Positions 55,691 to 61,584 of a stretch of DNA of 64,000 nucleotides are shown piece by piece (the first letter of the stretch is position 1; the number at the start of each line of letters is the position of its first letter). The notes under the pieces were generated by a model, which was given only the letters and a program-made list of their open reading frames with translations, searched no databases and was not told the DNA's origin. The DNA lies in assembly GCA_002269645.1 (NCBI GenBank), contig NIVC01001842.1, forward strand, positions 62,001-126,000. The letters are read 5' to 3'. This DNA is from Macrostomum lignano. Taxonomy: Eukaryota. The position numbers and the translations under genes were made by a program.

Positions 55691-58600
55691 TCACTTCTTC
55701 AAACCTGCGAAATATTGAAAAAATATAGAAATTGTTTGAGTCTGTCTGTCTGGCTTCCCATCTGTCTGTGCCTGTCTGCCTGCCTGTCTGTCTGGCTTCC
55801 CATCTGTCTGTCTGCCTGTCTGTCTGTCTGGCTTCCCATCTGTCTGTCTGTCTGTCTGCGTTTGCTTTTGTGACTGTCTTCCCGTCCGTCTTTTATCTAT
55901 CTATCTATCTATCTATCTATCTATCTATCTATCTATCTATCTATCTATCTGTCTATCTATCTATCTGTCTATCTATCTATCTATCTATCTATCTATCTAT
56001 CTATCTATCTATCTGTCTATCTATCTATCTATCTATCTATCTATCTATCTATCTATCTATCTATCTATCTATCTATCTATCTATCTATCTATCTATCTTT
56101 CTATCTATCTTTCTATCTATCTATCTATCTATCTATCGATCTATCTATCTGTCTGTGGTTATCTTAGTGTCTCAGTTAGTCTGTTTGTCTGTCTGTCTGT
56201 CTGTCTGTCTGTCTGTCTGTCTGTCTGTCTGTCTGTCTGTCTGTCTGTCTGTCTGTCTGTCTGTCTGTCTGTCTGTCTGTCGGTCTGTCTGTCTGCCTGC
56301 CTGTCGTCAAACCTGTCCGTCCTCAAGCCTGCAATACCTCCCAGTTCCCCCAAAAGCATCTGCCTGACTCACAAGCCAGAGCCTCATCAGCGTAGAATCT
56401 GACATCGGCGTCGGAGTCCTTGATCAGCTCGGCCAGCGGTCCAGAGACGTCCTTCTTCACCACGCTGAAAAATTAAATTTTATAAATAAGATAGAAAGCA
56501 GTTTAAGGCTGAGATAATGCGGAAATTACAAACCTGGCATCCAGATGCTTAGCCAATCGGATCAAAGCTTTAACTAGGGCCATTCTCACGTTAGGCACCT
56601 TGTCCGCTGACAGCTTCATCAGTTGAGGCAGCAGAAGAGGTATGCATGAGGCTGGACCGTTTTCAATGAGCTCCTGGTTTGGGGTTGACAAGGCGGATTT
56701 TCTTAGGCGCTTAGAATGCAGACAGTTAATCTAGGCCAATATCTGAGCTAATGCTAGCTAATCTAAGCTACTATCTGAGCTAATGATAGCTAATCTAGAC
56801 CACTATCTGAGCCAATGCTAGCTAATCTAAGCTACTATCTGAGCTAATGCTAGCTAATCTAAGCTACTATCTGACTTAATGCTAGCTAATCTATGCGACT
56901 TTAGGAGCTAATGCTAGCTAATTTCAGGCAATAATCTGAGCTTTAAACAGAGATCAAATTTTGTAAATAACCAAGACCAAGTCTCACCTGAGCGGTCAGC
57001 ACCCACACCTTCCTAAACTGATAATTGCCATCGGTAGCCAGAGAGGCCAAAGCGGAGTTCTTAGCCAAGCCTTCAGCTAGAGTTTTCCGATCGCGCACGA
57101 TTCGCCCAAGCCCAATGGCAGCCGCCTGGCGAATGTCGTGCGCCTGATCTCGAAGCCAGGACACGTAGGCTGGCAGGATTGTGCTGGTCACCTGACTGTC
57201 ATCCTGCGGCATTGTTGAGGAATACTTCTATATGAGTATGGGTTAGGATTCTTGGCTGTGAGATTGGGATTCTTGGCTGTGAGAATGGGATTCTTGGCTG
57301 TGGGATTCTTAGCTATGGGATTGGGATTCTTGGCTATGAGATTGGGATTCTTGGCTAAGGGATTGGGATTCTTGGCTATGAGATTGGGATTCTTGGCTAA
57401 GGGATTCTTGGCTATAGGATTGGAATTCTTGGCTATGAGATTGGGATTCTTTGCTATGGGATTGGAATTCTTGGCTATGAGATTGGGATCCTTGGCTATG
57501 GGATTGGGATCCTTGGCTATGGGATTGGGATTCTTGGCTATGGGATTTTGATCCTTGGCTATGGGATTGGGATTCTTGGCTGTGGAATTCTTGGCTATGG
57601 GATTGGGATTCTAGGCTATGGGATTGGAATTCTTAGCTATGAGATTTGGATTCTTGGCTGTGGGATTCTTAGCTATGGGATTGGGATTCTTGGCTGTTGG
57701 ATTCTTAGCTATGGGATTGGGATTCTTAGCTATGGCCGGATTGGGATTCTTGGCTATGGGATTGGGATTTTCTTTAAAAAGGCATTAAAAAGCAAACTAA
57801 TTCTCACCATTGCGCTAAGCAGTTCGGGAAGGTTTTTCACAACGCCGAGACGAACTCGCCAATTTTGGTCGTTATAGAGCTTCAATAGGCTCGGTATGAT
57901 GGTGGCCTTCATGTCTGATGGCGATGTTATCTGATTGAGACGTAGGTTTGGGTTTGAAAGTGTTAAGTGACTCATATCTAAATATACTTATATACATATA
58001 CACGGATGACTCATAACTAACTAACCATATGTACATGGATGACTCATGATTATCCATATGCACATGGATGACTTATAACTATCCACATGTGCATTGATGA
58101 CTCATTACTACCTATATGTGCATTGATGACCCATTACTACCAATATGTGCATTGATGACTCATTACTACCTATGTGTATTGATGACTCATAACTATAGAC
58201 AGGCACATGGATGACTCATTACTATCTACATATACATTGATGACTCATTACTATCTACATATACATTGATGACTCATTACTATCTACATATACATTGATG
58301 ACTCATAACTATACACATGCACATGGATGACTCATTACTATCCACATGTAAATTGATGACTCTCACGAAACTGCACTCACGCTGAGCACATCTTTGAGAT
58401 GATCAAACACCGCCTGCTTGGCGGCAGCGGATCCGCTATCTGTAATTAAGCTGACCATGGTCTTCACCACCTCAGACGCGTCCTCTTTGCGCAGTTTCGG
58501 CAGCAGTTTCACCGTCTCCGCAATGATCTCGCGTCTGACTCGTTCGTCGTGCTCATTAACCAGGTGCTCCTTGAGCTTGGGCACCAGTTGACCGTTGAGT

Positions 58601-61584: not shown

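Follow-up and report, generated by a model that had tools for sequence, protein, structure and literature searches.

The 64,000-nucleotide stretch of Macrostomum lignano contig NIVC01001842.1 analysed here (positions 62,001 to 126,000 of the forward strand; hereafter the window, meaning the whole of this stretch) carries a gene, BOX15_Mlig017842g3, that encodes a divergent relative of PR65, the scaffold or A subunit of protein phosphatase 2A (PP2A). The gene is a genuine, constrained, flatworm-wide PR65 paralog, in which the ridge of HEAT-repeat loops facing the catalytic (C) subunit is intact, while the ridge facing the regulatory (B) subunits has been rewritten yet conserved. An earlier note, made from the window sequence, had described a collinear and strongly diverged PP2A-A paralog, and this description is borne out by database similarity (E ~1e-52), by an identity of ~28% to human A-alpha and by a fold match; the phylum-wide distribution of the paralog is new beyond that note. 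PR65 is among the most conserved signalling scaffolds in eukaryotes, and a constrained paralog at ~28% identity stands out among them; the animal duplicates A-alpha and A-beta are ~86% identical. The best explanation, which we regard as moderately probable, is that the gene provides a lineage-specific second PP2A scaffold, with the C-side ridge kept, the B-side ridge rewritten and the set of partners changed.

A flatworm clade of divergent PP2A scaffold paralogs

In a phmmer search against all PDB chains, the only strong matches of the 606-residue product are PP2A A-alpha and A-beta (E 8e-53 to 1e-52), with query residues 42-604 aligned to chain residues 22-584 (563 residues each) without net indel; the next family, CAND1, follows at E 1e-6. 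A HMMER scan of 1.84e9 cluster representatives returned few close relatives, then a gap, and then the mass of PR65 sequences (23-29% identity, E ~1e-43 or weaker), and all matches inspected among the best 150 are PP2A-A. Long or multi-stretch matches were considered as possible PPP4R1 proteins and rejected, all those inspected being canonical A subunits with inserts. A profile hidden Markov model (HMM) of canonical A assigns 348.5 bits to the M. lignano protein and ~345 bits to its clade, whose members are 26-31% identical to human A-alpha. The AlphaFold2 model, derived with 31 homologs, has a mean predicted local distance difference test score (pLDDT) of 90.4 and a predicted template modelling (TM) score of 0.77, only the first 40 residues being uncertain. 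A Foldseek search of the PDB with this model placed PP2A A chains in all of the top 30 ranks, the best of them in holoenzyme conformations (8uwb, 9mf5, 2npp; TM 0.81-0.85).

The protein shares with PPP2R1A and PPP2R1B (PR65; yeast Tpd3, Drosophila Pp2A-29B) a collinear solenoid of ~590 residues and 15 HEAT repeats, the horseshoe fold, the HEAT 11-15 motifs xWRVR, D..R, NYxxR, DxVPNVR and DxDxDV, and many acidic and basic residues of the N-terminal ridge. It differs from them in a new N-terminus of ~40 residues, which takes the place of the first helix of HEAT 1, and in a HEAT 4 loop that is longer by one residue; long low-complexity inserts after HEAT 12 and HEAT 13 are found in the neodermatan orthologs. 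These inserts are rich in Ser, Thr and Asn (at ~487-580 and 620-690 in sequence P0014) and lie inside the half presumed to bind the C subunit. The best matches also include an unusually long animal protein annotated as 'A beta isoform-like' (XP_072125779.1, or P0017; 751 aa) and two giant HEAT-repeat proteins, each matching in several stretches (P0015, 3120 aa; P0020, 3731 aa, from Abyssalbus ytuae), one of which is bacterial.

A scaffold for PP4c or PP6c, either a PPP4R1 analogue or a very divergent PPP4R1 ortholog, is a distinctly unlikely alternative. PP2Ac, PP4c and PP6c are close relatives, and PPP4R1, likewise a HEAT solenoid resembling PR65, serves as a scaffold for a PP2A-like catalytic subunit and has diverged from PR65 to a comparable degree. 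The canonical-A HMM gives 227 bits for a PPP4R1 sequence of which the N-terminal 339 aa are 98% identical to a database PPP4R1-like protein and the C-terminal part is unvalidated, against ~345 bits for the clade, which is therefore almost as far from canonical A as PPP4R1 is. However, the clade has no specific sequence affinity with PPP4R1: an HMM of the PPP4R1 N-terminus gives 31.6 bits for the M. lignano protein and 12-38 bits across the clade, below the 101.3 bits for human A, and phmmer gives the M. lignano protein 183.5 bits to human A compared with 55 bits to this PPP4R1 sequence. No PPP4R1-like protein was present among the inspected best 150 matches, the HEAT 13 'NYxxR' loop is of the PR65 type, and human PPP4R1, with ~950 aa and a large central insert, is unlike the flatworm protein in length and architecture. 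Clustering with PPP4R1, an outcome that the earlier note had considered, is contradicted by the HMM and phmmer scores, and this affiliation was rejected.

The closest relative outside Macrostomum is a protein of Schistosoma bovis (CAH8624104.1; 38% identity, E 2e-89), whose 90% cluster covers many Schistosoma species and whose gene (L006, OX104100.1) spans ~18 kb. Searching from this protein identified trematode orthologs in Trichobilharzia, Heterobilharzia, Calicophoron, Dicrocoelium, Paragonimus, Opisthorchis, Fasciola and Fasciolopsis, as well as cestode orthologs in Schistocephalus, Spirometra, Echinococcus, Taenia, Hymenolepis, Rodentolepis, Mesocestoides and Anoplocephala. The fluke and tapeworm orthologs are 35-38% identical to the M. 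lignano protein. All named members of the clade are flatworms. In databases they appear as 'hypothetical' or under the misleading label 'PP2A 65 kDa regulatory subunit A alpha isoform'; the names 'SOCS box' and 'Ankyrin repeat-containing' given to some cluster members may stem from fused gene models. No planarian-like representative was seen among the matches of the HMMER scan, and no description of the clade as a distinct PP2A-A subfamily was found in the literature searched.

S. bovis additionally encodes a canonical A subunit, RTG84928.1, with 58% identity to human A-alpha. Since the same species carries both the divergent and the canonical form, the two are true paralogs, and their lineages split before Macrostomum and Neodermata diverged. 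A neighbour-joining (NJ) tree was computed from 19 clade members together with 109 canonical sequences. The divergent clade and its two branches, macrostomid and neodermatan, were each recovered in 100/100 bootstraps; the gene thus falls in a separate clade rather than in the single conserved animal PPP2R1 lineage. By distance, the nearest canonical sequences are S. bovis canonical A and human A, and S. bovis shares four of the nine intron positions of the M. lignano gene. The clade is most simply explained by a single duplication of PPP2R1 early in flatworm evolution, followed by rapid change and then stasis. In mechanistic terms, the canonical A subunit was most likely duplicated before macrostomids split from flukes and tapeworms, and the duplicate would have diverged rapidly before strong purifying selection set in.

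It is very unlikely that the gene is instead the canonical PP2A A subunit of M. lignano, evolving fast and without any extra paralog. No canonical A of M. lignano was retrieved among the matches listed by a protein-word search, which cannot be restricted by taxon, or by text search, or from the supplements of the M. lignano papers. Two canonical-A transcript contigs (P0018 and P0008) were considered as Macrostomum sequences and dropped, as they come from different samples and share no leader sequence. Against this alternative stand the coexistence of both genes in S. bovis and the replacement, in the flatworm protein, of the near-invariant W257, which is present in 100 of 101 canonical sequences. 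Of the paralog claim in the earlier note, the paralogy itself is demonstrated in S. bovis, while the separate canonical PPP2R1 whose presence in the genome the note proposed to confirm was not found for M. lignano in these searches.

The PP2A-A-like gene is real and constrained and is no pseudogene. Compared with L001, an intron-free 1884-nt transcript contig (SRR28338163) from a related copy or species with 86% amino acid identity, the proportions of differing non-synonymous and synonymous sites are 0.081 (pN) and 0.647 (pS), with saturated synonymous divergence (dS), and the ratio of non-synonymous to synonymous divergence (dN/dS) is ~0.057, with values of 0.025-0.094 across all 100-codon blocks. 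A ratio near 1, which the earlier note had singled out as telling against its proposal, is far from these values. The coding sequences of the window copy (g3) and of a second genomic copy (g4) differ at 10 sites, two of them non-synonymous. A decaying duplicate or an annotation artefact has a negligible probability, being refuted by the evidence on selection and conservation. Its introns packed with minisatellites, in a genome that is highly repetitive and polyploid, would suit such an account; however, the open reading frame is intact, each intron has GT-AG ends, a transcript contig exists for a related copy, dN/dS is ~0.06, and there are three near-identical genomic copies, phylum-wide orthologs and a confident AlphaFold2 model.

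The catalytic- and regulatory-subunit ridges

Residues were compared in an alignment of human A-alpha (the sequence of PDB 2ie3_A), the 19 clade members and 108 canonical representatives, and substitutions were checked in both HMMER and MAFFT alignments. On the C-subunit ridge of HEAT 11-15, all 19 clade members keep W417, R418, V419 and R420 in HEAT 11, D453 and R459 in HEAT 12, N494, Y495 and R498 in HEAT 13, and D531, N535 and R537 in HEAT 14; V533 in HEAT 14 and D572, D574 and V575 in HEAT 15 are kept in nearly all. In total, 12 of 15 canon-conserved loop positions of this ridge are retained. The loop correspondences reported earlier for the M. lignano protein, namely KWRVR>NWRVR with R418 kept, PNYLHR>GNYQFR, VANVR>VPNVR and DVDVKYFA>DADVRFYA, were reproduced in both alignments, so that the claimed retention of the C-terminal catalytic-contact residues holds at the level of single residues. 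Judged from these residues, the paralog, like PR65, would most likely use its intra-repeat HEAT 11-15 ridge to bind a catalytic subunit of the PP2A type.

The B-subunit ridge presents a different picture, for it lacks residues that canonical A subunits conserve, including W257. R105 is replaced by G in macrostomids and by A, V or S in neodermatans; W140 is lost clade-wide from a loop that has gained one residue (DWFT-SR to DL(F/Y)C(S/A)SR); T178 is I or V throughout the clade; R183 is E in macrostomids and A or S in neodermatans; D218 and W257 are each R in 19/19 clade members; and R258 is N or D clade-wide. P179>L is confined to macrostomids, while flukes and tapeworms retain Pro. In canonical A of S. 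bovis, the residues that are replaced in the paralog clade are all present, including R105, W140, R183, W257 and R258. The changes R105>G, P179>L, R183>E and S256-W257-R258>H-R-N previously read from the M. lignano protein were recovered in both alignments. For W140>L, the loss of Trp is clear and its replacement is ambiguous, being L in HMMER and F in MAFFT around the insertion (DWFT-SR versus DLFCSSR).

Contacts mapped on human A-alpha allow these changes to be placed on the surface of the scaffold. B55-alpha touches W140, F141, T178, R183, D218 and W257; B56-gamma1 touches W140, F141, D177-M180, R183 and W257; PR70 touches W140, M180, R183 and R258; and striatin binding requires HEAT 1-3 (PMC7862067). 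Cho et al. described a common footprint of small-t and B56 that comprises E100, W140, F141, D177, P179 and M180 (PMC1945078). Of the six B55 contacts, five or six differ in the clade, and two of these changes reverse the charge. In human cells, one substitution at P179, R183 or R258 is enough to abolish B55 binding, but it spares B56-delta and often raises striatin binding (PMC7862067, PMC9707111). The HEAT 3-7 ridge has thus been rewritten at B55, B56-gamma and PR70 contacts (R105, W140, T178, R183, D218>R, W257>R and R258>N/D), and a B55-type trimer is therefore not expected to assemble on the paralog.

The rewriting is not a wholesale loss of the N-terminal surface. Among N-terminal ridge residues, D63, E64, E100, E101, V104, R182, D215, R221, D254, R260, D293, E295, E297 and R299 are kept, and the retention of canon-conserved (>=85%) ridge positions is 17/29 in HEAT 2-10 compared with 12/15 in HEAT 11-15 (Fisher p = 0.19). 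A coarse division into a diverged N-terminus and a conserved C-terminus was rejected, as identity to the human protein is 26.8% in HEAT 1-10 and 25.8% in HEAT 11-15. The claim that B-subunit contacts had been lost is therefore right in that the B55, B56 and PR70 contact residues are replaced clade-wide, and overstated in that many N-terminal ridge residues persist and the asymmetry is non-significant.

Conservation within the clade is informative about the state of this surface. Between macrostomids and neodermatans, 62% of positions in the HEAT 2-10 ridge loops are conserved, against 35% of non-loop positions (p = 7e-5), and the C-binding loops follow the same pattern (69% against 34%). Since the HEAT 2-10 ridge is conserved within the clade, a changed set of partners is favoured over a lost or decayed surface. 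The same observation bears on a decoy or sequestering scaffold, which would bind the catalytic subunit without any regulatory subunit and act as a buffer or inhibitor of PP2A-C. An intact C-side ridge combined with replaced key B-contact residues would fit such a scaffold, and human hotspot mutants are partly dominant negative (PMC7862067, PMC9707111). However, conservation within the clade is as high in the HEAT 2-10 ridge loops as in the C-binding loops, and the replacement residues are fixed, with R at 218 and 257 in every member, as expected of a surface that still binds something. A purely sequestering role is accordingly disfavoured, and we regard the decoy as unlikely.

Possible partners and meaning of the paralog

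Under the preferred reading of a second scaffold with a changed partner set, the paralog would channel the catalytic subunit to restricted or different partners. Candidates would be a subset of the canonical B subunits, such as striatin-like or certain B56-like proteins, or a flatworm-specific partner. A more specific version, put forward only tentatively, is that flatworms possess a second class of PP2A-type holoenzyme, in which a phylum-specific scaffold and a co-evolved dedicated partner would be insulated from B55-type regulation. This version draws on the conserved HEAT 3-7 ridge with Arg at 218 and 257 and with R183 and W140 lost; the partner itself may be flatworm-specific.

Several observations weigh against a lineage-specific scaffold with altered partners. 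The difference in ridge retention between the N- and C-terminal halves is non-significant (p = 0.19 and p = 0.09). Lenaerts et al. found that defects in B-subunit binding are largely unpredictable from contact lists (PMC7862067). Within the B56 footprint, E100 is kept, D177>E and M180>L are conservative, and P179 is kept in neodermatans, so some B56 binding may persist. Hotspot substitutions in the human protein also lower C-subunit binding by at least 50% (PMC7862067), and C binding by the paralog is therefore not to be taken for granted. The NJ tree does not settle where the clade attaches to canonical A, because its stem branch is very long, and the midpoint root falls on this long branch. 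The canonical A of M. lignano missing from the searches above belongs to the same side of the balance.

The closest parallel to the flatworm changes lies in human disease. Hotspot variants of human A-alpha (P179L/R, R183W/Q/G, S256F, W257G and R258H/S) fall on the same ridge positions as the clade changes, and the macrostomid Leu at 179 equals the human variant p.Pro179Leu. These variants bias holoenzyme assembly, losing B55 and several B56 isoforms and keeping or gaining B56-delta and striatin (PMC7862067, PMC9707111). The human changes are single somatic or de novo mutations in the only major scaffold, whereas the flatworm ones are ancient, occur together and have been fixed under purifying selection in a distinct paralog that exists beside an intact canonical gene. 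With substitutions fixed where human cancers and neurodevelopmental disorders carry mutations, the flatworm paralog constitutes a natural experiment in biased holoenzyme assembly and could reveal which ridge residues encode the choice of B subunit. As the clade includes Schistosoma, Fasciola, Echinococcus and Taenia, it represents a parasite-lineage-specific part of an essential phosphatase system, and a loss-of-function look at the paralog in parasites is worthwhile.

No expression or tissue data for the gene were found in the literature or in the supplements of the M. lignano transcriptome and genome papers. In the Schistosoma literature on PP2A, the sole match was an unrelated 'PP2A' housekeeping gene, Smp_166290, and a paper on Echinococcus multilocularis stem cells names PP2A only alongside CIP2A.

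Gene model, copies and surroundings

The gene model was rebuilt from three-frame translation and splice sites, and comprises ten coding exons, with GT-AG boundaries at every intron, the start ATG at 61584 and the stop TGA at 55691-55693 (Table 1). The coordinates and the 606-aa length proposed before were reproduced exactly by the rebuilt exons. The product is identical to PAA63452.1 (BOX15_Mlig017842g3) of the free-living flatworm M. lignano without a single difference, which identifies the window as the g3 locus. Two candidate acceptors exist for exon 7, at 57203 (606 aa) and, 24 nt upstream, at 57227 (614 aa, with eight additional residues). The transcript contig L001 shows the same exon 6/7 junction, 'LSAM|DDSQV', and the same 14-nt last coding exon ('ACLKK*'), and these unusual parts of the gene model thus have transcript support. 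The introns before exon 4 and after exon 6 occupy positions shared with the S. bovis ortholog. The N-terminus encoded by exon 1 is conserved in the related sequences P0003 and P0004 and partly in Schistosoma.

Table 1. Coordinates of the PP2A-A-like gene in the window
Feature	Position	Strand	Basis and remarks
Whole coding span, BOX15_Mlig017842g3	55691..61584	-	Spliced open reading frame = PAA63452.1; collinear with PP2A A subunits, E ~1e-52
Exon 1, aa 1-44, clade-specific N-terminal extension replacing the first helix of HEAT 1	61453..61584	-	pLDDT ~51-54
Exon 2, HEAT 1 inner helix, 'EKLRVVRTMSIIAEKLG'	61263..61353	-	Splice model and phmmer alignment
Exon 3, HEAT 2-4; D63/E64 and E100/E101 equivalents kept; R105>G	60198..60455	-	Alignment
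Exon 4, HEAT 4-8; remodelled loops DDLFCSSR, DEILLVRE, DNHRDLR, DAHRNTR	59244..59681	-	Alignment
Exon 5, HEAT 8-10	58381..58697	-	Splice model and alignment
Exon 6, HEAT 11; NWRVR loop = W417/R418/R420	57808..57930	-	Alignment
Exon 7, HEAT 12-13; D..R and GNYQFR loops	56988..57203	-	57203 acceptor backed by transcript L001
Exon 8, HEAT 14; DKVPNVR loop	56534..56673	-	Alignment
Exon 9, HEAT 15; DSDADVRFYA	56373..56464	-	Alignment
Exon 10, 14-nt terminal coding piece, ..CLKK and stop TGA	55691..55704	-	C-terminus also in L001 and GenBank model

The introns are AT-rich with tandem repeats, and the exons are generally GC-rich, although exon 1 is itself AT-rich (GC 0.38). GC content is 0.38-0.43 in exons 1-2 (61263-61584) and 0.48-0.59 in exons 3-9 (56373-60455). 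Every intron longer than 300 bp (within 55705-61262) is largely a tandem array, with intron 4 as a possible exception, which is repetitive by eye and is absent from the Tandem Repeats Finder report at a score of >=200. Intron 9 contains (GTCT)n and (TATC)n microsatellites, while intron 7 carries a 32-mer, intron 5 a 29-mer and intron 3 a 54-mer. A 21-bp minisatellite (TATGGGATTGGGATTCTTGGC) occupies intron 6 (57237-57769) and intron 2 (60600-61189) in opposite orientations, forming inverted arrays of 530-590 bp each, separated by ~2.8 kb in the pre-mRNA; another, related array is located at ~5988-7246, ~50 kb away.

The window product differs by two residues from that of the g4 copy and by three from that of a g1 copy. 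The g4 locus (NIVC01000607.1, L003) is colinear with the window, with introns that are 90-95% identical and with repeat arrays of different lengths, the gene covering 8.2 kb there and 5.9 kb in the window. These duplicate loci fit the known recent polyploidy of M. lignano. More distant relatives include a partial transcript, L002, which keeps the same motifs at 45-46% identity, and a further M. lignano paralog (P0004, UniRef A0A1I8ICP4; 682 aa), which is 70% identical and ends in a low-complexity tail of ~75 aa. From the saturated dS of L001 and the 70% identity of P0004, it follows that the subfamily underwent a further duplication within Macrostomum, long before the genome was recently doubled.

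The neighbouring gene, on the plus strand, encodes an LLC1 domain (PF14945), occupies ~48.4-53.0 kb of the window and converges on the PP2A-A-like gene, ~2.7 kb from the stop codon of the latter; the position of the LLC1 gene was derived by colinearity with the annotated g4 locus. The earlier note had read this adjacency as a hint of a ciliary or sperm role. The LLC1-domain neighbour is real, and adjacency is all that points to such a role; no LLC1 neighbour is present within 10 kb of the S. bovis ortholog. In animal genomes, the adjacency of two genes counts for little as evidence of a ciliary or sperm function. The LLC1 gene contains large tandem arrays at ~47657-49392 and ~49836-51195.

Elsewhere in the window, a long tandem array at 33242-34050 is 93-96% similar to an array at 4092-5118 of the g4 locus sequence (L003). 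The latter lies ~5 kb upstream of the g4 gene and the former ~28 kb from the window gene, a difference that may be explained by a dispersed satellite family or by a rearrangement between the copies.

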